Sequence record: MN047793.1
Length of the DNA: 64,000 nt
Direction: 5' to 3' (one strand)
Part shown: positions 24,501 to 64,000 of the stretch, one piece after another
Layout: every line of letters starts with the position of its first letter
Position numbering within the stretch: position 1 is the first letter of the stretch
The notes under the pieces: generated by a model
Told to the model about the DNA's origin: nothing
Databases searched by the model: none
What the model saw: only the letters and a program-made list of their open reading frames with translations
Made by a program: the position numbers and the translations under genes

Positions 24501-27500
24501 CAAAGTCAACCGGGATTATTCAGTAAAACTTCTGGACTATTTTTCCTTGACGACCAAATCAATTATGGTATTGGTGGTACTATTAAAGAACATAATGATG
24601 GATTCGACTCATTAGTTTCTTCAATTCTTGTTGAAAATGGTAATCCAGTAACGGTAATCGAATTCGCTAAGAACCAGTATGATAATCAGCTACGCTATAT
24701 CAAAGAACGTTTCTATCAAGAAGCGGCTTCCCTATTCCTAGCAGATGAAACTGTTATTACTGCAAACGATCTACAGTCATTTATCACTGATTCTCTAATA
24801 AATTACGTAGAGAACAACGGTAAATTCGACCAGTGGTTTGGTGACTCTACGTCATACAACCCAACAACTAAGCTAGGGGTTCGTAATTGGATTGCCTCAT
24901 TGCCTCAGTTTGGACTAGAAGCGCGGCAACGTCCTTATATCGTTAAGGATTCTGACCAGAACTTATACGAAGTACATTGCCACGATGGTCATGTAGTAAA
25001 TGTCGCCTTCACTCCTGCGATGAATGAGCAGTTATTACGCCGTGCAGTTGGTAAGTCGCCGTCAATCACACAATTAGTGACTAATGAAAACGTACCGTTC
25101 CCGACCACAGTAAATGGTAATCAGCTTTCTATTGGTACATATCTAATCCGTACAAACACGGTTGCTAAGACACGTAAACTATATCGTGCTACTCAACTCG
25201 GTGTATGGCAAGAGTTAGATTTAAATAGTATATTCGCAAATGCAGTTCTAGAATTAGAAACCCGTCTATACAATACATTAGATGTTAATACTGATGCTAT
25301 TAATTTCAAATCAGTATATGATTTCAGTAAGGTAGAATCTAATAGTGGATATTCTTCATTAATGGAAGAACAGTTCCAGGCATATGCAGTAACAGAAGGT
25401 ATTGACTCTCCTCTAGTTAATACGTCACGTTTCCGACAGAATAATCCATTTACATGGAATTATTATCATTCTCCAATTAAAAATGATCCATTAACTGGAA
25501 ATATTTCTTATAACACTGCCGGCACATGGCAGGCATTGTATGAAAATGTTTACGGTACAGCATACCCACATCTTGAGCCATGGAAACTTCAAGGTTATGT
25601 CAATAAGCCAACATGGTGGGATACTGAATATGCTGATATAACAGGTCTTCGCCGTTGGAAAATCGTAATGTGGGCTAACGTGTTCAATGGTATCGTTCCT
25701 ACCAGTGGAACTACTCCAGCAGGGAACCCAGGAACAAGCGTCCCAGGACAAATTACTAATCGTTTTTCATATCTTCCAGTAAACGTGTCAGGCACGACAA
25801 CTGACGATGGCTATGCCCCAGACGATATTCTTCCACCATATTGGAACAGTATTAACACCAGCGATACTCGCGTGCGTGGATTATATGATCCAAACTTTGG
25901 TGAGTTTGTCACCACCCCACAATTAAACTTCGAATTTGGACAAAATGGTTTAGTTGAATGGCAATGGAAGCAGTCCAATGCATATGCATATGATCGATTA
26001 ATTGTAGCATACAAACTTGACCCAATGCGATTCATGCATCAGACGTTTGGGGCAGAATATCAGGTAGTATCATGCCTACAAATTTCTAAAGAAACGGAGA
26101 AGGTGTTTAGCCATTCGGATATGATTTTCCATGGTGATTATCAAGACGATACTAATGACATTTACCGTGCTCATGGATTGAATCAATGGTACGTCCATTA
26201 CAACCGTTATAGCGGTTTTGATGGTGTTTCTTCAGAATTCCGTTCCCTATGGAAGGAATGGGAAACTGACCTTGCATATCTTGTTGGCGCTTTCTTAGAT
26301 ACTCCAAGTTTCCGTATCAATAGCGATTTCTTTGATATTACAACTAAAGATTATGAGATTGCCGTTAAGAAAACTAAGGGTATCCGTGACGTATGGTTGA
26401 ATTCATTAAATGCGACCGCAATAACAGTGCCTTCACAATATGCGAAACTTCGTGACCAAGGAATTGGCTGGACAGTAGAATTTGCTAATACTAATCCAGT
26501 ATCTCGTCCAATAGAATATTTTGCTACACAAAATTACTCCGTAAATTTAAATACTGGTACTAGTACATTCCGTACGTATTCATATCCGCTAAAGAGTGCA
26601 GACGTAACAGCTGCTAGAGGATATCAACAAGCGACGTTTAATAGTCCGGTAGCATTAAATTTATTGACCGGGTTATCTAACCAGACATACACTGCGAATA
26701 TTACATTCAATAATACTACAACGGTATCCCTAAGCATTGCTGGAACTACAGTTACTACATTCTCTGACCTAATTGATAATATTAACAATCAACTAGGAAC
26801 ATCGGGAGTTATGGTTATTGAAAATGGTAATTTAGTGGTATACAGCGGTAACTCTACTTCAAGTACTTCCGTAGAAATCGCCGACGGTAATTTGTTCAAC
26901 GCAATTACTGGATTTGTTTCATTCGAAGACCCTGCAACGACAAGTAATAAATTTGAGAAGGTATTCCGTATAGATGGTAATTTTTACGGAACGTTTGTGG
27001 ATGCAGGTAGTATAATCATTCGGAACGCTGGGGTATTCAATGGTACATATACTATCAGTAATGTGTACTATGATAGTGCAACATTCCAAACCTTAGTATT
27101 CGTTAATGAATCTGTTACTTTACCTACTACAGGAGCAGTTCCTGTAACTGGAGTAATTGAACCAGTTAATGCTAAGACTCTTCCTGATGAATGGACTACC
27201 GGAACAGTTGTTTATTTCAACACTACAGGATACTTACCAAATAATCTTGATGACGAACTACCATATTATCTGATTCGTGTAAACGCTCGCGAGTTCCGCG
27301 TAGCAGAAACGGCCGAGGCAGCAGAGAAGGGGATTGCCATCACTCCTTCAGGTAATGCTATGGGCGAAGTGTTCATCGGGAATATCCTAATGACATTTAA
27401 CGCTCTTGGTGGAACACTAACGGATTACAACTGGCGTCGTCACGCTGTAGACACTCGTTATGTTGAGAATTCTTCAACATTGAGTATTTCAGGAATCCAA

Positions 27501-30500
27501 CAAATGGTGGACTTCCTTACAGGCTTCGATGAGTACTCTCAGGCACAAGGCTTCCGCTACCGTAATGTAAATGGAGAGAATGCAGACCCAGTTACTGGCA
27601 GAAATAATGACTGGCAGACTGAAACTGAAAAATTCATTAATTGGCTATATGCTCTACGTAATTCGCAGCAAGAAACTATGTTGCGTTATGATGTAGTAGG
27701 AAATGCGTCGAACAATGCATTGGCAATGACATCCGGTTCCGTCCCTAATTGGGCAAATGGAACTGCGGTCGTATTACTACCACAAAATGGTTCAACTCTT
27801 CCGCCAGAATTCGATAATCCACTTTCTTCAACTGTTCCATATTACGTAATTCGTGTGGCTAATAATACTAATGAATTTAAATTAGCAGCAACGGCGTATG
27901 ATGCAGCAAAGGGTAATGCTATTACTTTAACTGGTAATGGTAGTGGCACCTTCCAAGTAATGGTTTATAAAGCTATTACAAAATTCCCATCATACGAGTT
28001 AAATCCATTCAAGAACTACATCTGGATCAACCATGAAACGGGTGTTCTAGCTAACGTGCTGGATGATGATTATACTGACCCAATGAGTGCATCAAGATTA
28101 TTTGATAATAATCTTCTAGAATTAAATGCACAAAATGTTCTAGTGTTCCGCGAGGATAAAGAAAGTCGAATCTCATTAACTGGAGATAGTATCACTAATA
28201 ATGAATCTGGTAAAACAAATTCATATATGGCAGGTATGCATCTATTCTTTGACGGATTTGAACATATGATTCGATTCGAAGATAGGTCAGTAGATAATTC
28301 ATTAATTTATGACTCTTTCTTTGGATTAAACACTCCACGATTCTACGTTGAATTTGATCGCCAACAAGATTTCACTTTACGTCCAAACGTAGGCGGATTC
28401 TTCATGAGCGGTAGTAGTCTCGTACAAAACTTTGAATCTACTGTAAATGATATGCGCTATTATTACGATAGTGTTAAGGCCCCTGAAGGTCGTGCAACTA
28501 CAGATTTAGTTCGTCAATCATTAGGTTATGATGGAGCCAAAGAGTATATGGATGATTTGAAAATCAATCCTAAAACTCAATTCCAGTTCTGGCAGGGTAT
28601 GATCCAGAATAAGGGTACTAATAAGGCTGTAACGGCATTCGTCAATCAAGATACATTTGACACCGCATTAGTTGATGAATTCTGGGCATATAAGGTTGCA
28701 GAATTTGGTGACAATAAAGAACGTAATCACATCGAAATGAAGTTACTACCAAGTGACGTTGTTAAGAATGAACTACGTGTAGAATTTATTGCACCAGAAA
28801 ATACTGCGGTAGACTCTACGTTTACCAGTGTCGCATTAACTGACCTATCTCGCTGGTGGAATCAACCTGACCAAATTCAGGCAATGTCACCTAATGAAGC
28901 ATTCTTCTTCAATGCAAAGGTAGTTAATTACATCGCAGATTTAGCTCCATGGATTAAGGTAGTGAATGGTAAGCGCATATTCCAATCACCATCATATTAC
29001 ATGGACGCAGTGGTTGTAACATATTTCAATCCATTAACCAAGAAGACTGTTACCTTAAACGAAGGACTTGAGTACAAATTCTTGAACGCAAAAATCATTG
29101 AATTTATGGTAGACCTCAACACTCTACCTACAGTTTCTATGAGTATGCTATCTTATGATTATGATTCTCAAAACCCCGCTAAGGTAATCGATAAAGATGC
29201 CGGACAAGTAGTGGCAACACTACCCATCTGGAACCCAGCTATGGGTCATTACTTCGATGCAGCATACTATGCAGTAGACTTACATCGTCCTACCGACCCG
29301 GCAATTTATACAAATTCACTGGATGGTTCAGATACTGGTAATGCTACTTGGAAGAATAACCATGTAGGAACTGTTTGGTTGGACAATAAGCTGGAGCAGT
29401 ACGTACCGTATTACGACAAGACTGTGTACCCATCAACCGGTGCCCGTATATCTCGTTGGGGTAAACTAGCACCGTGGGCAGAAATTAATCTATACCAATG
29501 GACGCGTACCCTTATCGCTCCGGAAGATTATGATGAAATCGCACGTCGTCAGTCTTATGACATGTCAATTGCTGATGCAGATAAAGAAACTGGTACAACA
29601 TACAAGCGTCTATATCTAAACAGTAATGCACTAGACCCGGAAACCTCTAACCTTGACCCATTCTGGGTAGAAGTTAAGGATACCCATTATGACTTCACAG
29701 CTGGATTAAGTGAAGATAGTATGAACAATACCTTGGGCGGTAAGGTTGTTGAAGTGTACATAAACGCCGTATATCGTGAAACCATTGAATTTGAAGATGG
29801 TAATGCTGTACGTGCATATTTCACTCAATTCAATTTCGGTGATTACTGTCATGTAATCGCACGTGCGGAAGTACCGACATCCGAGCAATTAGAAGCTGGG
29901 GTATATCGTTATTTCACTCCCCACACCATAGAAAAACGTTTTGATGTCAAGTCTGGACAGACATACAACGTTTACTATTATTGGGTAACAGATAAAAAGC
30001 AGCCACTTTCTGATTTAAACCCATCAGTGTCTTTATATTCAGCAAAACGTCAATTGACTGATATGTCAGAGCCGTATATAATCCTACAGGGTCTACGTAC
30101 ACCTGACTTCGGTTATGGTTTGATATTCGGTCACGTGTTCGATGAATTTGCCTTCAACCTACCATATCGTTATACCCAAATGGTAGCAAAGGGACTTCAT
30201 GGTACAGTAAAAGATAATAACCGTTCAATAATTCGCTTCACTCGTGACTTCACCCTACGTGACAAGTTAGACGCGGATTCCATCACGCCTAAGAACCGTC
30301 ATGAAGAATGGAAGCTATTCCGTGAGCAACAATTAGAGAAAGTCGATAGATACCTGTGGAATAAGATTACCGAAGCTCTTATTGGATTCCGTTTAAGTAC
30401 TGATTATAATTCTGCGAATACGAATAAACCAATTCCATCATTAAATAGAATCTTATTCGACCGTTTATACCAAGCTGATACTCAATATGGTTTAGGTGAT

Positions 30501-31409
30501 CAACAGGTATTCACCAATAAAGACCTATCGCGTGATACTATCATTTCCGTGCTGAGCAACCCAAATACTCAATTCGAATATGTGAATATCGAAGAGTTCT
30601 TGTCCCGTCATAACTTCGCAACTCCGGAAGATATTATTCAGGCAATGAATGAAATCTATGTAAACTTCTCAGTGTCTGAAGTTAATAAGATTTTCTTCGC
30701 AGTATTACATGATGCCATGAGTTTGAAGATGGAGCATGCAGAAATATTCAAGACATCATGGGTAGGACTCCAGATTTCTAAGAATGTAGTACCATCAATT
30801 GCTGTACCATACGATGAACTTCGTTTGGTTCCTGGCCCAGATTGTGCGACAACACCCCCCGCACCATCACCGACACCATCCCCAACAAGTACACCAAATC
30901 CGTCAACCACGCCTACACCGACACCCAGTCCCACACCATCAAATAATATTTGTGGTGGTGGAGTTAATGACAGAGTATTGGAAGAAAGTGAGGGACGCAT
31001 TACTGAAGATGGAGAATGTAGAACATTAGAGCCGAATGCTGTCCCGGTAACACCTACACCGACACCATCTCCTCGTGTTGCTGTTACTGTTGTAGGTGTC
31101 ATCACAATCGATTCGGAAGGTGGTTACCATTTTGATATTGGTACATATTGTGGGTCAAGTCCTATAACTTCACTACAATTTTTGGGAGATAGTGAATTAA
31201 GTCAAGATGTCACATTAACATGTGGAGGAACCGCATTGCCAGGAATTTATTATGCATATAATAAGCCTGCGGCTACATTAATTGGTAATGAATGGTATAC
31301 TGCAAATATAGATTTTCCTCCAACAGCCGAACGCTATATTGTAAGAACCTTGATAAATGGTAATGAAACAATCTATCTCCGATTAGTTAACCCAAATTCA
31401 GAGGTATAA
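21591..31409 (+). CDS. Giant baseplate wedge protein (gp7-like, 3272 aa) with Thr/Pro-rich C-terminal linkers
   Basis: Follows gp6; FNWVPPIDMDKMVNYRDYYW, QFWQGMIQNKGT, DEFWAYKVAEFG motifs; late promoter ACTAAATA 21554-21561; GTG start. Confidence 0.7.
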   Translation: MADKNSDYKKKHLNLNDFLPATNRGEFMDSLNKNLFNRYLTKDEFDHIVGIIGDADPNDKINKQITERSSFRQANQLQPVVSKKIGSINHFMSFEDFMTRIGRTGVDTDKFDEWGNALQFNWVPPIDMDKMVNYRDYYWDSLVNRDHSIPQYITIKSQQNWSAARFRQSLKTLVDVVGLTNVASANASQKKIAIAGNLVDTFRAGEHFVLSQADGSLDLLSIRNVTLNVATGNTELETNEAFSTSTPLTAYLTRADISVTSISGNKVTVSGDFSNLLIKDYVIGINTSALKLMEIESSSFDALTNVTTITVAGLNQNNFTKISLFPTVSLMQAEAEVSVNPTSILPQGQWSNDTIGKLLWYSNTELLNGSTGRTVFGSTLLEDITKDFTAFGIQTSDLLEIAEGNKGSGLYSVAAVSPTQIFTNNQFFSAQNISYRVIRPFSVESISSTVSPGNVSPNALWFNPTNDSLYQWNGSTWNIVLVGLSLLKTLISDRKVVNYSNKNDWTADNHWVHRSQITEYTGMIRAQMPIIEYFPYIELSETSYSTKLWRYRKDVNSTYLTSSTPPKLVELFNFRYSGNEFAFTDLRTMVFHNKYGNFVSELKAGDVMRLSGFTQNDGLYTVKSVSFAQPSQNARAVSTIEFDNPIIATNDLPIGATFAPELTANGDKFTGLSSKHWEFGGITDISASSLLPEKNPMLDINVGTVTSNGFESIIGLYSQTYSSQGNVLVEPTLFFDNSLHDLVLYDDYQEGDIRVYVNGERLYGAFEDFASNINPDYVGGIRFINGYTVRSTDVIRIELGEYALADIGLRAVEVNTASGPVLYNLTNIRKIEQRKGEGNQYPYFALRDIFGKRLNLATSIFRFLESDTSPVNSNTLKRIVSTGDGTDYSFVQELKNPQTGQLYCYYDFQQIGDELQTIWKRGTYSEQYVPLKIDGQWEMPNQWYYNVSHDNYTEVKLTEIFRHFKSIIDVQSQPGLFSKTSGLFFLDDQINYGIGGTIKEHNDGFDSLVSSILVENGNPVTVIEFAKNQYDNQLRYIKERFYQEAASLFLADETVITANDLQSFITDSLINYVENNGKFDQWFGDSTSYNPTTKLGVRNWIASLPQFGLEARQRPYIVKDSDQNLYEVHCHDGHVVNVAFTPAMNEQLLRRAVGKSPSITQLVTNENVPFPTTVNGNQLSIGTYLIRTNTVAKTRKLYRATQLGVWQELDLNSIFANAVLELETRLYNTLDVNTDAINFKSVYDFSKVESNSGYSSLMEEQFQAYAVTEGIDSPLVNTSRFRQNNPFTWNYYHSPIKNDPLTGNISYNTAGTWQALYENVYGTAYPHLEPWKLQGYVNKPTWWDTEYADITGLRRWKIVMWANVFNGIVPTSGTTPAGNPGTSVPGQITNRFSYLPVNVSGTTTDDGYAPDDILPPYWNSINTSDTRVRGLYDPNFGEFVTTPQLNFEFGQNGLVEWQWKQSNAYAYDRLIVAYKLDPMRFMHQTFGAEYQVVSCLQISKETEKVFSHSDMIFHGDYQDDTNDIYRAHGLNQWYVHYNRYSGFDGVSSEFRSLWKEWETDLAYLVGAFLDTPSFRINSDFFDITTKDYEIAVKKTKGIRDVWLNSLNATAITVPSQYAKLRDQGIGWTVEFANTNPVSRPIEYFATQNYSVNLNTGTSTFRTYSYPLKSADVTAARGYQQATFNSPVALNLLTGLSNQTYTANITFNNTTTVSLSIAGTTVTTFSDLIDNINNQLGTSGVMVIENGNLVVYSGNSTSSTSVEIADGNLFNAITGFVSFEDPATTSNKFEKVFRIDGNFYGTFVDAGSIIIRNAGVFNGTYTISNVYYDSATFQTLVFVNESVTLPTTGAVPVTGVIEPVNAKTLPDEWTTGTVVYFNTTGYLPNNLDDELPYYLIRVNAREFRVAETAEAAEKGIAITPSGNAMGEVFIGNILMTFNALGGTLTDYNWRRHAVDTRYVENSSTLSISGIQQMVDFLTGFDEYSQAQGFRYRNVNGENADPVTGRNNDWQTETEKFINWLYALRNSQQETMLRYDVVGNASNNALAMTSGSVPNWANGTAVVLLPQNGSTLPPEFDNPLSSTVPYYVIRVANNTNEFKLAATAYDAAKGNAITLTGNGSGTFQVMVYKAITKFPSYELNPFKNYIWINHETGVLANVLDDDYTDPMSASRLFDNNLLELNAQNVLVFREDKESRISLTGDSITNNESGKTNSYMAGMHLFFDGFEHMIRFEDRSVDNSLIYDSFFGLNTPRFYVEFDRQQDFTLRPNVGGFFMSGSSLVQNFESTVNDMRYYYDSVKAPEGRATTDLVRQSLGYDGAKEYMDDLKINPKTQFQFWQGMIQNKGTNKAVTAFVNQDTFDTALVDEFWAYKVAEFGDNKERNHIEMKLLPSDVVKNELRVEFIAPENTAVDSTFTSVALTDLSRWWNQPDQIQAMSPNEAFFFNAKVVNYIADLAPWIKVVNGKRIFQSPSYYMDAVVVTYFNPLTKKTVTLNEGLEYKFLNAKIIEFMVDLNTLPTVSMSMLSYDYDSQNPAKVIDKDAGQVVATLPIWNPAMGHYFDAAYYAVDLHRPTDPAIYTNSLDGSDTGNATWKNNHVGTVWLDNKLEQYVPYYDKTVYPSTGARISRWGKLAPWAEINLYQWTRTLIAPEDYDEIARRQSYDMSIADADKETGTTYKRLYLNSNALDPETSNLDPFWVEVKDTHYDFTAGLSEDSMNNTLGGKVVEVYINAVYRETIEFEDGNAVRAYFTQFNFGDYCHVIARAEVPTSEQLEAGVYRYFTPHTIEKRFDVKSGQTYNVYYYWVTDKKQPLSDLNPSVSLYSAKRQLTDMSEPYIILQGLRTPDFGYGLIFGHVFDEFAFNLPYRYTQMVAKGLHGTVKDNNRSIIRFTRDFTLRDKLDADSITPKNRHEEWKLFREQQLEKVDRYLWNKITEALIGFRLSTDYNSANTNKPIPSLNRILFDRLYQADTQYGLGDQQVFTNKDLSRDTIISVLSNPNTQFEYVNIEEFLSRHNFATPEDIIQAMNEIYVNFSVSEVNKIFFAVLHDAMSLKMEHAEIFKTSWVGLQISKNVVPSIAVPYDELRLVPGPDCATTPPAPSPTPSPTSTPNPSTTPTPTPSPTPSNNICGGGVNDRVLEESEGRITEDGECRTLEPNAVPVTPTPTPSPRVAVTVVGVITIDSEGGYHFDIGTYCGSSPITSLQFLGDSELSQDVTLTCGGTALPGIYYAYNKPAATLIGNEWYTANIDFPPTAERYIVRTLINGNETIYLRLVNPNSEV
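30849..31073 (+). repeat. Pro/Thr/Ser-rich low-complexity repeats in the giant wedge protein
   Basis: TTPPAPSPTPSPTSTPNPSTTPTPTPSPTPS (30849-30941) and VPVTPTPTPSP (31041-31073). Confidence 0.9.
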
Positions 31410-33972: not shown

Positions 33973-35613
33973 TTAATTTGTGTAGAGGTCATTTTCGCGA
34001 CGTGTACTGCCGTCATAATGATACACCCGATTATGGTTAATTGGAGTAGCCAATAGACTGCCTACCTTTAGCTTTCCGTCACGCATGTGCATCATAGTTT
34101 GACTCATCCAAGTCTGTTCATACAGTCCTGCATAACGAACTTCCATGAATACTACCTGTGTACCTTTTTTAGTAAACATGATCGGCCAATTACAGTAGTG
34201 GTATTCACCTACAGCATAAGGTAGTCCTTTATGGGTTCCAGTATAGTCGATCTTTACTTTCCATACTTCAGTACCATCTTCACGGTCAGGGAAGTATTCG
34301 GACTTTTTACTTAGAGGTAAATTCTCCCATGCCCAGTTCTTATGGTTATCACCATAAAACTCACTGAATGCCAATTTCAAGTAATCTAGTTTTTCAGATT
34401 TCATGATATCTAGGCATTTATCAAACAGGTCATTATGATAGGTACTAAAGCCACTCTTACATAGACCAGCACCGGGAGCATGGAATAACATATCGTCTTC
34501 GAAAAATACCATGTATTCGTGCTTAGACGCTAAGAAATGTTCGGCTGCAAACTGTCTCCCGCCATTGATGCCAATGTTATCTTTTTTAAATACCTCAAAC
34601 CCATACTGCGTAAATAGTTCTTGGTAACGATCAGCTACTCGTGGGTCAGTAGAATTATCAATCACGTATTTACGAACTTCTTTGAATTCTTTCGGGAATG
34701 TTTCAGACATCGACTTAGCCCATAATTCAAACTGTTGAGGTAAATTATACGTTAACACGTAGAATGCCAGTTCTTCTTCCACATCCATAACTGGCTTGTC
34801 TTTTAAATCTTGAAAATACTTATAAACTAAGCCGTTATTTTCAATCATACGTACATTTACTTTATTAGGATATTTGTAAGCAATAATAGTGAAAATTGAT
34901 TCCTCGGTTCCCATGAGGCGATTACCGAATGATTCTGACATTAGACCATAGTAAATATCATTGATTTCATTAATTGCGTGTTTTGGTCCACCGAATATGC
35001 CACCACGACAGACAAACTGGGTTTCTTTACCAGCCATACGATCCATGGCAGTTTTTTCGAAACCGTGCACTTCCACTGTACCGTCGTAAGGGAATGCCAC
35101 ATAAAGCATCTTGTTTAAGTCTGGAGTAATTCTACGTTCAAATTCCTTATCAATGTATCCTGCCGGATCACCGATAGTATTGGCAATACCAGCATCAATC
35201 CAAAGATAATATTTGGTGTCGAAAAAGTTAAAATGGGTAGCATCGTTCAGGTAGAACTGCTTAGACATTACTAATGGATTGTATAGTTCTAATTTAGCTT
35301 GTGTAGAATCTACAATCCATCCAGACTGACCATACCATTTAGGGTCCACTCGAATGTCTTGAATATCCTTATAGAAAGGAAACTCACGTAAATCATCTAG
35401 CGACTTAAACACTAGACGTGTATTCTCCCGGCTACGATGCTGCCAGATAACTTCTTCTAAGCTAGGCTCGCAGTAAATGACCATTGGGTAATCTACTTTA
35501 AGTAGCTTAGTAAAACTTTCTACATAATGATCAAACGAACGTTTGAAGCCTGATTCTAAATCTCCACGACCTAAATCAAACAGTGCGGTAACTAGGGTAA
35601 GGTTGCTGCTCAT
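33973..35613 (-). CDS. Two-domain glycosyltransferase: HtrL/YibB-like N-domain plus GT2-like C-domain
   Basis: TLVTALFDLGR, YNPLVMSK, YYLWIDAG, GGIFGG, EESI; then VLTYN, VIDNS, NIGINGGR, YMVFFEDD. Confidence 0.75.
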   Translation of the reverse strand: MSSNLTLVTALFDLGRGDLESGFKRSFDHYVESFTKLLKVDYPMVIYCEPSLEEVIWQHRSRENTRLVFKSLDDLREFPFYKDIQDIRVDPKWYGQSGWIVDSTQAKLELYNPLVMSKQFYLNDATHFNFFDTKYYLWIDAGIANTIGDPAGYIDKEFERRITPDLNKMLYVAFPYDGTVEVHGFEKTAMDRMAGKETQFVCRGGIFGGPKHAINEINDIYYGLMSESFGNRLMGTEESIFTIIAYKYPNKVNVRMIENNGLVYKYFQDLKDKPVMDVEEELAFYVLTYNLPQQFELWAKSMSETFPKEFKEVRKYVIDNSTDPRVADRYQELFTQYGFEVFKKDNIGINGGRQFAAEHFLASKHEYMVFFEDDMLFHAPGAGLCKSGFSTYHNDLFDKCLDIMKSEKLDYLKLAFSEFYGDNHKNWAWENLPLSKKSEYFPDREDGTEVWKVKIDYTGTHKGLPYAVGEYHYCNWPIMFTKKGTQVVFMEVRYAGLYEQTWMSQTMMHMRDGKLKVGSLLATPINHNRVYHYDGSTRRENDLYTN

Positions 35614-35618
35614 AAAAC

Positions 35619-36362
35619 TTAAATAATCCTCATAATTTTATCGTGATGTAAATACCTAAATGTATGTAGAACTGGATAAGGTCTCATGTAATCAAGTATT
35701 GGGTGATGCGGTAATTTTGATTCGCTCATTGCGTAGGAAATTTCCAAAGCTTCTATGAACGGATTTATGCCACGGTCATAACAGCGCCGTGTGATCATTT
35801 CCCATTGTGCCATAAACTCCCTAAATTCTTTACATTTAGGCTTGAAGAACATAAAAACCTCAATCGGCATACGGGCTTTGATATTAATTAGTTCAATACT
35901 GAGAGCCGTAGCTTTTGGCTCAGTCATAAACTGGAGAGCTACTTCTTCACATGGACGATTGCGGAAACGAGCAATAAGCCCTTTATCTTCGTGGTCAATA
36001 AACTGCTGCCATTCTTCTTCATTCCATCCAATCATAAATCCATCAGCATCAGCATGTACGATCATATCGTAATCCTGCATGCCGTAAGCTACTTTAGTAG
36101 GAAGCATTTTTAGATTATAATTGAATTGACGTTCGGCATACCAAATGTTTTGTTTGGTAACATCCTCGATAGCAAACAGCTTAACTCTATCTATTTTTTC
36201 TGGGTGATTACGCTCGACGTATCCAGAAAGTTCTTTAACGTCATCAGTGATAATCAGTATGTCACCTTTAGTCAATAATAGAACGCAATCAATTAAGGTG
36301 GTCACCTTAAAAGTGTATGCGGTACCGAGAGCTAACGTAGCAAATATGTATTTCTTATCCAT
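35619..36362 (-). CDS. GT-A fold glycosyltransferase (GT6/GT8-like)
   Basis: FATLALGTAY, ILIITDD, FNYNLK, IVHADAD (DxD); start moved to ATG 36362. Confidence 0.6.
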   Translation of the reverse strand: MDKKYIFATLALGTAYTFKVTTLIDCVLLLTKGDILIITDDVKELSGYVERNHPEKIDRVKLFAIEDVTKQNIWYAERQFNYNLKMLPTKVAYGMQDYDMIVHADADGFMIGWNEEEWQQFIDHEDKGLIARFRNRPCEEVALQFMTEPKATALSIELINIKARMPIEVFMFFKPKCKEFREFMAQWEMITRRCYDRGINPFIEALEISYAMSESKLPHHPILDYMRPYPVLHTFRYLHHDKIMRII

Positions 36363-37215
36363 GTAACACCTTGAAGAAGTCTGAAAAGCTAACATCTTCT
36401 CCAGGGCGATACATTTGTTCCCAATCTTCGTGATACCACGTATTGAAGCTGAATTGAGTGAAGTTGTCGGGATGTGCTTGATGAAGATGATACATAATCT
36501 CTTCTTCTTTTAGTAATACTCCATTATCGACTACTCGTTGCATATGATGGAATGCTTCAGCGATATACGATAATACTTGGTCGCGTTTTCCACCAAACAT
36601 TCCACCAATCACACCAAATTCTGGACGGTAACCGTAAACCTTTTGGAAGTCATCTGACCCATGGTTTACTTGTTTCGAGCGGATATTTAAAACTTTATCA
36701 CCAACATAATTACACAAATCGTTATAAAGATCACGATGTTGTGTAATCATATCAAAGTCATAAAAGTTTTTACTAGCTTCGGAACGGAATTTATTGGTAA
36801 TTAGACCACCATGAAATAGTCCGGCATCAATCCAAAAGATACTATCCGTATCATCAAGTTCTGAAACATTCTTCCATAACCAGATAAATTTACCCCACAT
36901 AATTTCCACACATCTAGAACGCCAAGCGGCTTCTGTAGTATATTTTGGGTCTACACCTTTAATTTTATCAATATCCGCATGATAATAGTTAGATTCTAAC
37001 TCTTCAGACACAACCTTAAGATTCGGGGTTGACGTAAAATATTTAACTAAGTCATCATAATGGCGAGATGAAGTATAACAGACGATAGAATATCCACCGT
37101 CTGCTAAAGATTTTAATGATTGAATATACCTATCATAGATGGCGGCGGTATTTCCATTCAGCCGCGTACCTTCTAATCCTGAATATATTGCAGTGACGAA
37201 CTGTGCCTTAAACAC
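36355..37215 (-). CDS. HtrL/YibB-like glycosyltransferase
   Basis: FVTAIY, IMWGKFIWL, IFWIDAGL, IGGMFGG, EEEIM motifs paralogous to 33973 N-domain. Confidence 0.7.
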   Translation of the reverse strand: MFKAQFVTAIYSGLEGTRLNGNTAAIYDRYIQSLKSLADGGYSIVCYTSSRHYDDLVKYFTSTPNLKVVSEELESNYYHADIDKIKGVDPKYTTEAAWRSRCVEIMWGKFIWLWKNVSELDDTDSIFWIDAGLFHGGLITNKFRSEASKNFYDFDMITQHRDLYNDLCNYVGDKVLNIRSKQVNHGSDDFQKVYGYRPEFGVIGGMFGGKRDQVLSYIAEAFHHMQRVVDNGVLLKEEEIMYHLHQAHPDNFTQFSFNTWYHEDWEQMYRPGEDVSFSDFFKVLHG

Positions 37216-37217
37216 GA

Positions 37218-39515
37218 TTATTCCTCTATTAATTTAACTTTATCGATAGAGCCAAGAATCGCTAAGGGTAGATACTCGTGATCCTTCACACTTATCTTAC
37301 CAAGCTGTGAGTACCATAAGTACATCGCTTCCCATTGATTACTTAACCATTCTACGTGTTCAAAACTTCCACCGAAGAACTTGACCGTAGGATGTAGTAA
37401 ACCAATACCTTGACCAAATTTATCAGAAAGCCACTGTTCAGAGAATAATTCATTAGTAACATTTCGTGATGCTGATAAAATCAAATGCGTATTGTTCTGT
37501 GACATGGTAATGATGTTAGTCAACTCTTTATTGAAAGATGACGGAACGAATTGTGCAACATCGACGAATACGTGATGCGACGCTAGGTAGCGGTCTTCAT
37601 TTAGAGCTTCCTTAGTCCAAAGCATACGAATCTTATCAAACGCTTCTACCACAGTGGTGGAACCGTGATAATTTTTAAGATAGATGTGGCGCGGCTCGAC
37701 GGTATATACATGGAATCCAGTTAGGTCAAACTTGGTACTAGTTACGGCATCTGTTATAATAACTACATTATCATACTGACGTAACGTGTTTAGATTTTCC
37801 TCAATAGTTGCATGCTGGCTCGCATCTTGTTCAAATACAAAAGCATTAATTCCCATACCAGTACGTGCTTTTTTGGAACTAAACACAGGTGAACGCTTGA
37901 ATTTGCGGGCATCCTTTTTCTTGAAAACTAGATTACCCTTATAGTAGATCGCATCTAGTTCAGATTCGTCCAGAATCTTGAATGCATCGGATAACCGGGT
38001 AAGAATAGGCTTACCGTTAACATTAAACGAGGTGTTCAAGATAACACCATGACCAGTATGTTTTTCAAATTCTGTAATCAGGTCATAGATTAATTCGTTC
38101 TGTAGGCGGGTAACTGTTTGTAAACGGGCGCTACCATCAGTATGAGTAATCGCAGGCAAAGTCTCTTGCCATTCATCACGCACGTTAGCTACGAAGGTCA
38201 TATGACGAGATTCTACGTTATAATCGTACACGAAGTATTTGTTGGCATCTTCCAGACGGGTAATCGGAGCAAACGGGCGATACCATTCACGATGTTTAAC
38301 CTTGTGGTTTAATACATCCTTCATGTCGCCAGACGGATTACAGATAATGCTACGATTACCTAATGCACGAGAACCGTGTTCAGAATTACCTTGAATTAGA
38401 CCGACAATGTTGTTGTCTGCTACAAACTCTCCTAGCTCCTGTACTGTGACATTTTCATACACAAAATACTTTGATTGATCTTGGATGTAAGTAGAGAATT
38501 CACGATCATCCATTACGGGAAGCCCGGAATATGTAAGGTCTACAGTATGCTTAGGACTTAAGTGCCATAAAATACCACCTACGGAGATACCGCAGTCGTT
38601 TGTATTAGGAGGAACGAAAACATTACCGCCCTTCATTTCAAGGAGACGGGAATTGAGTAGTACATTAAGCCCACAACCGCCTGACACGCTCAAGGGAAGG
38701 TGTTTGTACTTCTCAAGGTATGGCTCTGCTAATTCAAGGAAGAACTCTTCAAACGCACGCTGAGTGGTTGCAGCAATGTCCCAAGCTACCTGACCTGAAA
38801 ACCGTGTGGTTTCGAAATCGAAACCTTCAAGTAAACCAATAGCAGCAAACAGACTTGATACAGCATCAGTTCGTAACTCTAGACCACCAATATAAGAGTC
38901 TCCACTGTAGACGAACTTACGGTAATATTCTACGAAATGTGGTAACCAATCTTCTCTAACTGTTCCATAAGAACATAGACCCATTAATTTACCAGCATAC
39001 ACCAGATTACCAATGGATAGAGGATCACGCTTGATATCATCAAGGTAATCAGCGAGAAGCATATAGGGGAACCCCAAATCATTGGGTAGACGATCTAGAA
39101 GCTTAATACCAGTATTACGGTCAGCCTCGTAGAAGTTAAAATAGCTACCATCACCACCGCCATCGAAGGAAATTACTAACGATTTATCGAACGGTGATTG
39201 GTAGAATGCAGCCGCAGCATGGGCCACGTGATGGTCTGCTGCGATCTGCTGTTTGAAACGGAACTTAGGAATGATATTAGAAACATATCCAGTAATGTAC
39301 ATATCAACTTCTGATTTACCCGCTTTCTGTAGCAAGTAATCAGTAATTTCATCAAACACTACTTGTGGGTGAGAACATGGCATGTAATTAACTAAACCGA
39401 TGTTCTTCGAATTCAACCAACGCTCTACTTCTACAACGGTGTATTCGCCTTTGTAGTACATTGAGATAGCGGCGTTGTGTGATCCATACGCCGATATCAC
39501 CAGATAATCATTCAT
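37218..39515 (-). CDS. NodU/CmcH-family O-carbamoyltransferase with C-terminal degenerate HtrL-like domain
   Basis: HNAAI, HHVAHA..AF..SPF, SFDGGGD, GKLMGL.SYG, SGGCGLN, GSRALGNRSI, KHREWYRPFAP, H.DGSARLQTV, LNTSFN..GKPI. Confidence 0.92.
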   Translation of the reverse strand: MNDYLVISAYGSHNAAISMYYKGEYTVVEVERWLNSKNIGLVNYMPCSHPQVVFDEITDYLLQKAGKSEVDMYITGYVSNIIPKFRFKQQIAADHHVAHAAAAFYQSPFDKSLVISFDGGGDGSYFNFYEADRNTGIKLLDRLPNDLGFPYMLLADYLDDIKRDPLSIGNLVYAGKLMGLCSYGTVREDWLPHFVEYYRKFVYSGDSYIGGLELRTDAVSSLFAAIGLLEGFDFETTRFSGQVAWDIAATTQRAFEEFFLELAEPYLEKYKHLPLSVSGGCGLNVLLNSRLLEMKGGNVFVPPNTNDCGISVGGILWHLSPKHTVDLTYSGLPVMDDREFSTYIQDQSKYFVYENVTVQELGEFVADNNIVGLIQGNSEHGSRALGNRSIICNPSGDMKDVLNHKVKHREWYRPFAPITRLEDANKYFVYDYNVESRHMTFVANVRDEWQETLPAITHTDGSARLQTVTRLQNELIYDLITEFEKHTGHGVILNTSFNVNGKPILTRLSDAFKILDESELDAIYYKGNLVFKKKDARKFKRSPVFSSKKARTGMGINAFVFEQDASQHATIEENLNTLRQYDNVVIITDAVTSTKFDLTGFHVYTVEPRHIYLKNYHGSTTVVEAFDKIRMLWTKEALNEDRYLASHHVFVDVAQFVPSSFNKELTNIITMSQNNTHLILSASRNVTNELFSEQWLSDKFGQGIGLLHPTVKFFGGSFEHVEWLSNQWEAMYLWYSQLGKISVKDHEYLPLAILGSIDKVKLIEE

Positions 39516-39560: not shown

Positions 39561-40913
39561 TTAGGGTTGAACATCCTTTTCGATACGATTACCCCAACCG
39601 CGACTACGACTATGCGGCCATACAATATACTTTGTAGCAGGCTTATCACCGCGCCAAATTAAGCGGAAATCAATCCACTCATTCTGAACGTAGTTCTTAA
39701 TTTCATCTTCCTGGGCATCCTTACGGAAAATTTCAGTACCATTATCATCAGCTGAACCAACATACCAGAAATCATAATCGTATGGTTCTTCACCTAACTC
39801 TGCGCGATGTACTAATACACGAATATCATGTGAACCAATGAACGTAGCTTTCCACTGTTCTTCAGTTTCATACTTGAAGTCACCCGGTGGGTCTAGACGA
39901 TCAATAGTCTTCTGCTGAACACCACGATATTTGAAACTGATACCAGCATATTCTTCATACTGAAGAACGGTTCGCTTATCACCAAATCCATACTTACCAA
40001 AGTCAATCTGTTTCGGGTCTTCACCATCCATACCAAATAGAATGCGGTTACGCTTGTGGCATAGATCATTACGCTGTACCCAATCGAGTTCTACGCGACC
40101 TTTATTACGCTGGTTAGTGGTGTGGTCATCCCATACCTTGATTCGCCCCTTACGCGTATATTCATGCCATGCAATTAGGCGGTGAGGGTGGAACAAGTCA
40201 TAACCGTGAGTATATGCACGAACAGCAATAGAAATCTCTTCTCCATGAAAGAAGTATTCAGGATCATGCTGAACTTCAACAGCAAATGTACCATCAGCAA
40301 ACGCAAAGTGAGCAGAGAAGAAGCGAGCGCGGGTAGGTTTATCAAGTTCTCTCCAATTATCAATCGTGGACGGCATAAAGAACACTGCACCCTCTGGAAT
40401 GAAACGGTCAAAGTCCATCTTCCATGGGTCCATTACACGAGCAGCTGGATCATTTTCAGGATCAAAAGACGGGATGTATGCAGTTAGTAGCGGCTTTTCA
40501 TAACCATCTTCACGCAGACCTTCAAGCATATCGATACAAACCTTATCCCAGCCTTCAACGAAGCGGTGATGAGAGTCTAATTGCATTGTATACTTTTCGC
40601 CAGAGTATAGCTGTTGAATCTGATGACGTGCCCAGCATGCGCCTTGGGTTTTATGGAAATGTAAATCGATAACGGTGAACTTCGCACCATCCTTACTTAG
40701 ATGTAGTAGTGGTAGGTCCTTACTGAATTCTGACCCACTTTCCAAGACAAAGCCTGCGTCTAGGAAGATATCAATCGGGTCTTCTTCACCATGCTGCCAG
40801 CAAATACCGACGTGTAGGTTTTCAGGATGTTCCGCATGAGTCAGCATATCAAGAAGAGTAGGGACTAATTGCGGATCACGGTAAGCTGCCATTTGTACAA
40901 AAATTGTATTCAT
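39561..40913 (-). CDS. GT60-family polypeptide GlcNAc-transferase (Skp1 Gnt1 / mucin OGNT-like)
   Basis: IFVQMAAYRD, GACWAR, QLDSHHRF..GWD, LTAY, FFSAHFAF, DP..FFHGEE..AVR.YTHGYD.F.P, WHEY. Confidence 0.85.
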   Translation of the reverse strand: MNTIFVQMAAYRDPQLVPTLLDMLTHAEHPENLHVGICWQHGEEDPIDIFLDAGFVLESGSEFSKDLPLLHLSKDGAKFTVIDLHFHKTQGACWARHQIQQLYSGEKYTMQLDSHHRFVEGWDKVCIDMLEGLREDGYEKPLLTAYIPSFDPENDPAARVMDPWKMDFDRFIPEGAVFFMPSTIDNWRELDKPTRARFFSAHFAFADGTFAVEVQHDPEYFFHGEEISIAVRAYTHGYDLFHPHRLIAWHEYTRKGRIKVWDDHTTNQRNKGRVELDWVQRNDLCHKRNRILFGMDGEDPKQIDFGKYGFGDKRTVLQYEEYAGISFKYRGVQQKTIDRLDPPGDFKYETEEQWKATFIGSHDIRVLVHRAELGEEPYDYDFWYVGSADDNGTEIFRKDAQEDEIKNYVQNEWIDFRLIWRGDKPATKYIVWPHSRSRGWGNRIEKDVQP

Positions 40914-62884: not shown

Positions 62885-64000
62885 TTACCCGAAAGTCGGT
62901 GACCATGATTTGCCGCCATTACCTTGTAAGAAATTAACTTCTGCTGAAGTTAATGGTCTATTAAATGTGTATATTTCATCAACATCGCCAACGATGCGAC
63001 CATTTGATATTTCATTAAGAACTAAATTACTGTTTGTTCTTGGAGTAAAGTTTAACACTGCCGTTACCATTAGTGCGCCATTTGCATACAGTGATACATC
63101 CTCACCCGACACTGTAATCATGGTGGAAAACCATTGATTTATAGGAATGTCTAAAACTGATAAGGTGAAAGCTTCATTATTTGGGCCAACTATATTCCAG
63201 AATACAAAATTATTTGATCCATCATATCTTAGAGCCACGGTAGGGCCATTAGAAGTGTTACTGTACCCACCAAAAATTGTACCTGTTAGTGCAGTATCCT
63301 GAACTTTAACGAGTCCTCCAATACTAAAGCTGGTGGTATTTAATACGTTCGACTGAGGACCAGAATGTACGGCAGACGTTATTAACCGTTTACCACCTAA
63401 AGGACTGGCTTCATATGTATTGGAAAATCCGATAAGATCGCCTCTTCCTGAAATGTTATTGGCTACGTTATCGTTAAATGACCACCAATCTTCAGATGCT
63501 GCACGAATAGCATTAATCATCGGAGTAATAGTATCTGATGGAGTTACCGAAATTGTTGGCGTTACAGTTCTAGTAGGCGTACGGGTTACTGTTGGAGTAA
63601 TACTACTGGTTACTGTGATGGTAGGTGTCACGCTAGGCGTGATTGTTGCCGACACGGATGGCGTCAGGGTCGGGGTAGAGGTGACTGACGGAGTAGTTGT
63701 TGGGGTAACAGTTGCGGTAACAGTTATTGACGGAGTTAATGTGGCCGTAACCGTTGGTGTAGGGGTTATAGTAGCTGATGGGGTTATACTTGCTGTGATA
63801 CTTGGAGTAGGTGTTACCGTTGCTGTAGGGGTAACTGTCATCGTCGGAGTAGGTGAGGGAGTTATCTGTTTACCCAATAATACATTATATAAATCTGACG
63901 GAACTAATGATGGAGTCTGTACCACATTAGCGATGAACATCTGATATTCAGAAGACCATACTACAGAAGACAGGCGACGCGTCTTGTAAGTAGTAAATGA
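62885..64000 (-). CDS. C-terminal part of a tail fibre/appendage protein: mucin-like Thr/Pro linker plus LamG/ConA-like domain (5' end beyond window)
   Basis: Frame stays open from 64000; about 114-aa T/P/S/V repeat; then WWSFN, SFSIGG.V, W......SG..V.LY.NG, G..DE.Y.FNRPL...EV LamG pattern. Confidence 0.75.
   Translation of the reverse strand, partial: SFTTYKTRRLSSVVWSSEYQMFIANVVQTPSLVPSDLYNVLLGKQITPSPTPTMTVTPTATVTPTPSITASITPSATITPTPTVTATLTPSITVTATVTPTTTPSVTSTPTLTPSVSATITPSVTPTITVTSSITPTVTRTPTRTVTPTISVTPSDTITPMINAIRAASEDWWSFNDNVANNISGRGDLIGFSNTYEASPLGGKRLITSAVHSGPQSNVLNTTSFSIGGLVKVQDTALTGTIFGGYSNTSNGPTVALRYDGSNNFVFWNIVGPNNEAFTLSVLDIPINQWFSTMITVSGEDVSLYANGALMVTAVLNFTPRTNSNLVLNEISNGRIVGDVDEIYTFNRPLTSAEVNFLQGNGGKSWSPTFG
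63521..63864 (-). repeat. Mucin-like (xTP/TVT) repeat region
   Basis: ITPSPTPTMTVTPTATVTPTPSITASITPSATITPTPTVTATLTPSITVTATVTPTTTPSVTSTPT... Confidence 0.95.

Follow-up and report, generated by a model that had tools for sequence, protein, structure and literature searches.

We analyzed a 64,000-nucleotide (nt) window (bases 186001-250000 of MN047793.1) from the genome of Xanthomonas phage Xoo-sp13, a 309-kb jumbo myovirus whose host is Xanthomonas oryzae pv. oryzae, the rice blight bacterium. The window ends within the gene for Xoosp13_331, a protein annotated as 'hypothetical protein', in which Thr or Ser occupies every second position of a long, unbroken stalk. On balance, we lean towards the proposal that this stalk is the glycan acceptor of a GT60-like enzyme encoded by the same phage, in a cytoplasmic form of mucin-type O-glycosylation. 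We favor this proposal because the enzyme is of a polypeptide-glycosylating family (PF11397, with a predicted GT27 fold and an invariant triad); because stalks are abundant and specific to the clade, with none in GT60-negative controls; and because the linkage of GT60-like genes to stalks occurs independently in bacteria and in viral contigs. It is further supported by the glycosylation genes embedded in the same late gene string and conserved in relatives, by the presence of Schiff-stained glycoproteins in virions of phage XacN1, and by stalks that are more than linkers, being terminal in the metagenome protein P0123 and in Xoosp13_226 and Xoosp13_343, and dominant in Xoosp13_189.

The dipeptide stalk of Xoosp13_331

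Xoosp13_331 (QDJ96517.1) is encoded on the minus strand. Its reading frame is still open at the window end and the window therefore has residues 266-636 only, with the stop codon (62885-64000, stop codon at 62885-62887; positions are those of the window unless a record or locus is named). We retrieved the full gene, as the initial annotation had advised; it encodes 636 amino acids (aa) at record bases 248885-250795. The stalk lies at 63521-63865 on the minus strand (residues 311-425), within one base of the 63521-63864 given by the initial annotation, and is an unbroken (x-T/S)57 repeat in which x is mostly P, V, I or A. Its 115 residues comprise 46 Thr, 21 Pro, 14 Ser, 12 Val, 10 Ile and 6 Ala, with 6 residues of Leu, Arg, Met or Asp. 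Thr, Pro and Ser together make up 70% of the stalk versus 25.5% of the remainder of the protein (binomial tail 8e-24). Thr or Ser is found at 57/57 even positions in a single register without any shift, a regularity matched by none of 100,000 composition-preserving shuffles, and Pro is present at 21 of the 58 odd positions. The T/P/S/V/I/A composition and the alternation described initially were thus borne out, with the alternation stricter than claimed.

The pattern does not reflect a repeat in the DNA. Tandem Repeats Finder reported just 2.2 copies of a 12-nt unit in the stalk DNA, which is no real repeat, and blastn with the same DNA revealed no similarity to any other sequence, the other Xoo-sp13 stalks included. 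These two results rule out recent duplication as the source of the pattern and, together with the use of all four Thr codons in the stalk, imply that the pattern is kept at the protein level.

We modeled Xoosp13_331 with AlphaFold2 from an alignment of 48 sequences, as a monomer only. The model indicates an N-terminal beta-propeller, the stalk and a Laminin_G_3 domain, in that order. The propeller (residues ~25-250) was predicted with a predicted local distance difference test score (pLDDT) above 90, residues 486-625 formed a beta-sandwich made of strands only (pLDDT about 85), and the stalk with its surroundings (residues 307-485) had no secondary structure (pLDDT about 30-37), suggesting that the stalk is extended and intrinsically unfolded. 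The end of the propeller domain in the window is at 63866-64000 on the minus strand (residues 266-310), from where the gene goes on to record base 250795. The C-terminal domain occupies 62888-63520 on the same strand (residues 426-636). Within it, Pfam matched Laminin_G_3, a concanavalin A (ConA)-like jelly roll, at residues 481-621 (62933-63355; 44 bits against a cut-off of 27.6, expectation value (E) 3e-11), and found no other domain in the protein. Both the profile score and the predicted beta-sandwich place this region in the Laminin_G_3/concanavalin A-like lectin superfamily, in agreement with the terminal LamG/ConA-like domain proposed initially. The domain was matched by 338 representative proteins at E<=0.001, mostly multi-LamG giants.

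The description of Xoosp13_331 as 'fibre-like' did not hold. The elongated fibrous shaft of a phage tail fiber was not found in the protein body, which AlphaFold2 and Foldseek indicate to be a globular beta-propeller. The model matched Ycf48 propellers and trypanosomal (trans-)sialidases in a Foldseek search of the PDB, the latter sharing the propeller-plus-lectin-domain layout at only about 10% identity, and we take these matches to tell the fold class only. A sialidase role for the propeller was rejected in view of the 10% identity, the low template-modeling score (TM-score), and a match that reflects nothing beyond the propeller-plus-lectin layout. The stalk itself belongs with the mucin-like or Pro-Thr low-complexity stalks, a class and not a homologous family, on account of its T/S/P enrichment, its predicted unfolded state, its position between or after domains and its variable length in orthologues.

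Orthologues with exchangeable distal modules

The closest relatives of the N-terminal domain are ORF369 of XacN1, proteins of the Stenotrophomonas phages RAS14 and CM1, and the metagenome proteins P0122-P0125 and P0131. All N-domain relatives at 43% identity or more carry a stalk that starts at residue ~307-313, and the stalk varies from 44 to about 240 residues while the N-domain is conserved. What follows the stalk differs among them. P0122 has the same LamG domain as Xoosp13_331, P0124 has a LamG domain without significant similarity to it (E 0.13), and P0125 has a PA14 domain that comes after an unassigned region. In XacN1 ORF369 and P0131 the stalk is followed by a small Cys-rich knob, and in P0123 it is the end of the protein, with no distal domain. 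Between P0122 and Xoosp13_331, identity is 54% in the distal LamG domain versus 77% in the N-domain; by these comparisons the distal domain changes faster. Stalks are absent from the remoter propeller homologues (37% identity or less), of which several contain the tail-fiber chaperone domain PF13884. Weak propeller matches on unannotated frames of Synechococcus phages B3 and B23 were dropped.

A fixed N-terminal module with an exchangeable distal module appears to follow the usual plan of virion-anchored binding proteins, and Xoosp13_331 is probably part of the virion. From this pattern we infer its location in the particle and a role in adhesion, and likewise the binding of a ligand by the LamG domain.

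Stalks across the Xoo-sp13 proteome

The whole Xoo-sp13 genome was scanned in six frames, in pieces, for stretches of the stalk type. The stalk is not peculiar to Xoosp13_331, which is one of at least 12 annotated stalk-bearing proteins that we found (Xoosp13_174, _179, _189, _222, _224-_227, _296, _331, _332 and _343). Two of these have descriptive names in the record, 'mucin-16-like' for _189 and 'xylanase A precursor' for _343, which most likely derive from low-complexity matches. Strict (x-T/S) runs of at least 8 dipeptides amount to about 800 dipeptides in total, or 15.3 run-bases per kb genome-wide. The runs are interrupted by single failing dipeptides only, and the register persists for hundreds of residues. 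As a separate observation, the T/S phase is kept across breaks for up to about 400 residues in Xoo-sp13, XacN1, RAS14 and the metagenome relatives L007 and L096, with no DNA repeat. This persistence may stem from the mode in which indels arise or from selection for a reader of period 2.

The folded parts of the stalk proteins include an RCC1 propeller, a GDSL esterase, Barwin-like, WD40-like propeller, GTA_TIM and LamG domains, and the adjacent gene _173 is pectate-lyase-like. By these domain assignments, the stalk proteins form a set of modular, carbohydrate-oriented proteins. In Xoosp13_226 and _343, the stalk is at the C-terminal end. The 996-aa Xoosp13_189 (MN047793.1 108649-111639, equivalent to L011:11649-14639, plus strand) contains 236 strict dipeptides, nearly half of its length; it has no Pfam domain and a sole PHROG match (phrog_15511) at residues 409-654, which are partly Thr/Pro-rich. 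Xoosp13_189 looks more like a mucin-like protein than a linker-bearing enzyme. A second Thr/Pro/Ser-rich stretch within the window, at 30807-30974 on the plus strand near the C-terminus of the giant Xoosp13_296 (21672-31409), is less regular than the stalk of Xoosp13_331 and has no strict run of 8 dipeptides or more.

The GT60-like enzyme and its gene cluster

The GT60-type gene that the initial annotation supposed is present in the window. It encodes a candidate polypeptide N-acetylhexosamine (HexNAc)-transferase of 450 aa (39561-40913, minus strand) that matches PF11397 with 258.6 bits against a cut-off of 21 (E 1.5e-76), residues 3-327 covering positions 1-350 of the 352 in the profile. The top 40 PDB matches of its predicted structure (pLDDT 88.7) in Foldseek were all GT27 polypeptide N-acetylgalactosamine (GalNAc)-transferases, peptide-bound complexes among them (E about 1e-9, identity 10-15%); a sequence search of the PDB gave no match. 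Residues D113, S114 and H115 are invariant across 35 GT60-like homologues and, by analogy with the Asp-x-His metal motif of GT27 enzymes, this triad would be the metal site. The profile score and the GT27-related GT-A fold with its Asp-x-His/Asp motif place the protein in PF11397 and in CAZy family GT60.

With the first strand of the model starting as early as residue 4, the enzyme has neither signal peptide nor anchor, and without an anchor it should be in the same cytoplasm as the phage proteins under assembly. Xoo-sp13 is therefore predicted to have a polypeptide HexNAc-transferase of the GT60/GT27 family in the same genome and compartment as the stalk. GT60 enzymes are polypeptide alpha-N-acetylglucosamine (GlcNAc)-transferases related to GT27 that initiate mucin-type O-glycans in Dictyostelium and Trypanosoma cruzi; characterized members act on Thr/Ser-rich mucin domains, and one glycosylates cytosolic Skp1 (PMC8724618). 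The donor and acceptor of the phage enzyme, alpha-GlcNAc from UDP-GlcNAc and a polypeptide hydroxyl, are presumed from this family. Hydroxyproline-linked glycosylation, the Skp1-type activity of GT60, was set aside, as no prolyl hydroxylase was found in support of it. Eukaryotic GT60 enzymes are without the ricin-like domain of GT27 enzymes (PMC8724618). The phage enzyme has an extra, beta-rich C-terminal domain of about 95 residues (residues ~355-450) with no Pfam match.

The enzyme gene heads a cluster on the minus strand. Adjoining it is a NodU/Nol-like carbamoyltransferase gene (37218-39515; Carbam_trans_N and Carbam_trans_C, phrog_1601), and the cluster continues with two function-unknown genes for proteins of 286 and 247 aa (35619-37215; no Pfam or PHROG match), which are kept in XacN1 and one metagenome relative. 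The last cluster gene encodes a 546-aa HtrL_YibB-family protein (33973-35613; PF09612, E 2.5e-17) and is syntenic in L008, L094 and L095. The GT60-headed cluster is conserved in XacN1, in RAS14-type phages and in metagenome contigs of up to 389 kb. In the 345-kb metagenome relative L094, the cluster is without the carbamoyltransferase and has a sulfotransferase (PF17784, L094:14543-15196, plus strand), indicating that its decorating enzymes differ among phages.

Glycosylation genes beside Xoosp13_331

Xoosp13_331 is part of a late gene string that runs on one strand throughout. It follows Xoosp13_332 with a gap of 33 nt and is just upstream of the genes for a gp15-like sheath stabilizer and the sheath. 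Xoosp13_332 is a 1439-aa protein with a GTA_TIM domain, a match to phrog_4271 ('tail protein') and three stalks of its own. Directly upstream of Xoosp13_332, on the same strand and in the same string, is a second set of glycosylation genes, Xoosp13_333 to _335, which were assigned from Pfam and PHROG matches and lie just beyond the window (L001:12157-14743, minus strand). Xoosp13_333 is a TylF-like methyltransferase fused to a glycosyltransferase (phrog_1962), Xoosp13_334 and _335 match phrog_4603 ('alpha-2,3-sialyltransferase'), and Xoosp13_335 has a weak MptE-like match (E 0.0013) under Pfam's cut-off. The gene order from Xoosp13_335 to the sheath gene is kept in XacN1 (ORF375 to ORF367) and in two metagenome contigs; the counterparts of Xoosp13_333-335 are ORF373-375 in XacN1 and are also found in L007.

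Association of the enzyme with stalks beyond Xoo-sp13

A GT60-like gene was found in only 4 of 50,697 phage records, namely Xoo-sp13, XacN1, CM1 and RAS14. These are the same four cultured phages that have the closest propeller relatives, and the XacN1 and RAS14 proteins carry stalks. Sheath-centered regions of five GT60-negative myoviruses (160 kb) contained zero stalk runs, compared to 47.6 run-bases per kb in the same sheath module of five GT60-positive phages.

The association of the enzyme with acceptor-like sequence was also found outside this clade. We collected 80 bacterial genome loci with a GT60-like homologue at 35-59% identity and 10-kb flanks, and scored as stalk open reading frames (ORFs) those of at least 150 aa with at least 10 strict dipeptides. 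Such ORFs were present in 27 of the 80 loci. Run density, in bases per kb, was 11 within 1 kb of the gene, 8-10 at 1-4 kb, 0.5 at 6-8 kb and 0 at 8-10 kb, which gives a rate ratio of 42.6 for near over outer flanks (P 4e-8). With one case per lineage, the comparison stands at 7 near versus 1 (P 4e-4), and the lineages of the adjacent cases are Gemmatimonadota, Bacteroidota, Acidobacteriota, Verrucomicrobiota, Planctomycetota and Sphingomonas. The products of the linked bacterial ORFs include PqqD-like, fn3 and glycoside-hydrolase-like proteins.

In Gemmatimonadota (L018:8438-9232 and L051:8993-9877, both plus strand, and others), the GT60-like gene is immediately preceded by an ORF that encodes a PqqD-like domain with an (x-T/S)n tract. 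The PqqD-like domain is a peptide-recognition element in peptide-modifying pathways. The arrangement suggests a dedicated enzyme-substrate pair. In Ralstonia, Paraburkholderia, Achromobacter and relatives, a spike gene of type VI secretion, VgrG, is found at a distance of 1-6 kb from the GT60-like gene (L021:12273-15134 and L039:15081-17576, both minus strand, and similar loci of Burkholderiaceae).

Scanning with an alignment recovered at least 584 viral contigs with a GT60-like relative; a scan with a single GT60-like protein as query found nothing. Among the best 80 of these loci, a stalk ORF was present within 10 kb in 43. In about 20 of the 80, a count read off a table by eye that includes near-duplicates and corresponds to roughly 10 distinct arrangements, the stalk ORF is directly upstream on the same strand. 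Ten upstream viral ORFs were checked; one has a PA14 domain and three have InlB-B-repeat-like domains.

Biochemical evidence is available for XacN1, in whose purified virions Schiff staining revealed two or more glycoprotein bands (PMC5852040, Supplementary Fig. S4). Its authors suggested the phage's own glycosyltransferases as the makers of these glycoproteins (PMC5852040). Our literature search found no paper that ties GT60 to phage proteins or describes such stalks, and nothing on glycosylation came from the papers on RsoM2USA or from our searches for Stenotrophomonas jumbo phages.

Proposed mechanism and alternatives

If the stalk is the acceptor, the soluble GT60-like transferase would add HexNAc to the Thr or Ser at every second stalk position, after which the carbamoyltransferase, the HtrL-like protein, the methyltransferase-glycosyltransferase fusion and the two MptE-like proteins may extend and decorate the glycan. 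The sugar-bearing stalk would be stiff and protease-resistant, its 115 residues corresponding to roughly 30-40 nm, and would project the exchangeable LamG domain from the conserved propeller, the probable anchor on the particle. Where relatives lack a distal domain, the stalk itself would be a glycan-bearing hair. The comparative association in bacterial and viral loci and in the GT60-negative controls lends independent support to the initial suggestion that the stalk is a GT60 acceptor, and the initial interpretation as a whole was partly supported. The accompanying suggestion, that the stalk holds an adhesion domain away from the tail, fits the position of LamG distal to the stalk but does not describe a general role, since a stalk forms the C-terminal end of P0123 and of two further proteins of Xoo-sp13.

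Several points weigh against the stalk as acceptor. The proposal is built on association, with both the addition of a glycan and the identity of the sugar presumed. Pro/Thr linkers function sugar-free in many bacterial enzymes. The four GT60-positive cultured phages are one clade, and their co-occurrence of enzyme and stalk is therefore a single event. In the viral loci, stalk density is high at every distance from the glycosyltransferase gene and therefore fits a proteome-wide trait over a specific enzyme-substrate pair. In Burkholderiaceae, the GT60-linked ORF encodes a VgrG whose gp5-like domain is followed by a long (PT)n tract, and the enzyme may differ in role there; it may modify this tract or may itself be a secreted cargo. 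As for XacN1, the glycoprotein bands carry no protein identity in the text and supplement, and the text does not list ORF369 among the virion proteins (PMC5852040).

The strongest alternative is that the stalk is a plain, unmodified Pro/Thr spacer between folded modules and that the phage glycosyltransferases have other targets. We consider it unlikely, albeit deserving of serious attention. A spacer would be expected to look much as the stalk does, being predicted disordered, placed between domains and variable in length among orthologues, and the other stalk proteins carry the enzyme-like and binding modules (GDSL esterase, RCC1 and WD40-like propellers, Barwin-like and GTA_TIM domains) that are typical of linker-joined extracellular proteins. 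However, the C-terminal stalks have nothing to join, Xoosp13_189 is largely stalk, and a spacer does not account for the strict period-2 register. Nor does it account for stalks that are physically linked to GT60-like genes in unrelated bacteria and absent from the GT60-negative control phages.

The stalk could also be glycosylated with the first sugar added by the products of Xoosp13_333-335 and not by the GT60-like enzyme, whose gene is 23 kb off. These genes immediately precede Xoosp13_332 and _331 and share their strand. Their position and the synteny kept in XacN1 and metagenome relatives speak for this possibility, as does the glycosylation of flagellin Ser/Thr by MptE-like (DUF115/Maf) proteins. 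We nevertheless regard it as improbable. The matches are weak (the MptE-like match is sub-cut-off and the others are PHROG names only), and linkage to (x-T/S)n genes across phyla was found for the GT60-like gene and not for Xoosp13_333-335. Moreover, this possibility can be reconciled with initiation by the GT60-like enzyme if the products of Xoosp13_333-335 lengthen a glycan begun by the latter.

We find it very improbable that the stalk is a structured fibrous shaft, in which T/S alternating with V/I/A/P would build a regular, beta-type multimeric rod. The exact two-residue period, the hydrophobic residues at many odd positions and the register maintained over long distances would suit such a rod, and a model of the monomer only leaves room for it. 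Against it are the Pro residues at over a third of the odd positions, the absence of secondary structure from the model at a pLDDT of about 33, the wide range of stalk length among close orthologues and the use of the same motif as short inter-domain linkers. Finally, the chance that the repeat is non-coding or read on the opposite strand is negligible: a mechanical 174-aa ORF does exist on the plus strand (63420-63944), but it is no gene, its Gly/Val-rich product being a mirror image of the repeat, whereas the minus frame connects two domains with independent homology and confident folds, and orthologues retain both frame and architecture.

Relation to known glycosylation systems

The serine-rich repeat adhesins of Gram-positive bacteria, with GtfA/GtfB, are the closest functional analogue of the proposed system, an analogy of mechanism with no homology (PMC6973325, PMC7661464). 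Common to both would be a dedicated cytoplasmic O-GlcNAc enzyme, a glycan extended by further transferases and a stalk that presents a binding domain. Serine-rich repeat stalks, too, are built from repeats of the dipeptide type, with every other position taken by a hydroxy amino acid. They are Ser-rich and Pro-poor, whereas the stalk of Xoosp13_331 is Thr/Pro-rich; their initiating enzyme is of another glycosyltransferase family and fold than the GT60-like enzyme; and the accessory Sec export and cell-wall anchor of the adhesins do not apply to a phage protein. We have not filed Xoosp13_331 as a serine-rich repeat glycoprotein, as no such features were suggested in the protein or its neighbors.

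The mucin domains of Dictyostelium and Trypanosoma cruzi receive their first sugar from enzymes of the family to which Pfam assigns the phage enzyme, and these acceptors are Thr-rich with Pro, as here (PMC8724618). The parallel drawn by the initial annotation with the Dictyostelium spacer repeats falls under this heading. The eukaryotic GT60 enzymes act in the Golgi on secreted or glycosylphosphatidylinositol (GPI)-anchored targets, except for the cytosolic Skp1 enzyme (PMC8724618), whereas the phage enzyme is predicted to be soluble, has its additional C-terminal domain and would act in the bacterial cytoplasm. The GT27 enzymes that initiate animal mucins provide the nearest solved structures to the model of the phage enzyme, and dense Thr/Ser/Pro acceptor arrays occur in both systems; unlike the Xoosp13_331 stalk, animal mucin repeats have no strict two-residue register.

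The Pro/Thr linkers of bacterial cellulases and xylanases are disordered, variable in length and located between catalytic and binding modules. They are the closest look-alikes of the stalk in sequence, sharing its composition, disorder, position and variable length, but differ in that the stalks described here are phage-encoded, GT60-linked and sometimes terminal. Among viruses, mycobacteriophage glycosyltransferases reportedly modify the structural proteins of their own phage. Mycobacteriophages with glycosyltransferase genes have been described (PMC11256854), and chloroviruses and mimivirus use virus-encoded glycosyltransferases on their own structural proteins, independent of host secretory glycosylation (PMC4691112, PMC7019647). 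The enzyme families and acceptors of these glycosylated viruses are others (capsid or tail-tube tails, N-linked sites, fibrils). By descent, the stalk of Xoosp13_331 belongs neither to the serine-rich repeat adhesins nor to the mucin domains or the cellulase Pro/Thr linkers.

To our knowledge, few phages have been shown to carry glycosylated proteins in their particles, and O-glycosylation of the mucin type is considered to be confined to eukaryotes. We tentatively extend the proposal for Xoosp13_331 to a wider one, in which GT60-like enzymes and strict (x-Thr/Ser)n stalks would constitute a widespread, undescribed system of mucin-type O-glycosylation in prokaryotes and viruses, and virions of the XacN1/Xoo-sp13 clade would bear a cytoplasm-built, mucin-like brush on a dozen modular enzyme- or lectin-bearing proteins. 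If true, mucin biosynthesis would have a cytoplasmic counterpart in a jumbo-phage clade and in many uncultured viruses and bacteria, and its acceptor code would be simple and recognizable. Such a system would bear on the display of polysaccharide-degrading or -binding modules in the slime around Xanthomonas, on how stable the phages considered for crop protection are and what surface properties they have, and on the origin of the GT60/GT27 enzyme families. The stalk proteins are also concrete candidates for the glycoproteins reported from the XacN1 virion.

Other features near the tail genes

The gene next downstream of Xoosp13_331 encodes a T4 gp15-like tail sheath stabilizer or tail completion protein (62054-62863, minus strand; PF16724, E 5e-41), followed in the same gene string by the tail sheath protein (59809-61953, minus strand), identified by Phage_sheath_1C (E 2e-13) and the record annotation. 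An unannotated ORF of 139 aa lies just downstream of the sheath gene, in the gap between Xoosp13_328 and _329 (59302-59721, minus strand). It has no Pfam or PHROG match and is a candidate for the tail tube by its position; a 147-aa gene is called at the matching place in a metagenome relative (L096:14520-14963). Also near the tail genes are a protein of 280 aa whose C-terminal domain is a peptidyl-tRNA hydrolase PTH2 domain (57177-58019, plus strand) and a 309-aa protein with a zinc ribbon at its end (58211-59140, minus strand), and the position of both genes is conserved in L007 and L096.

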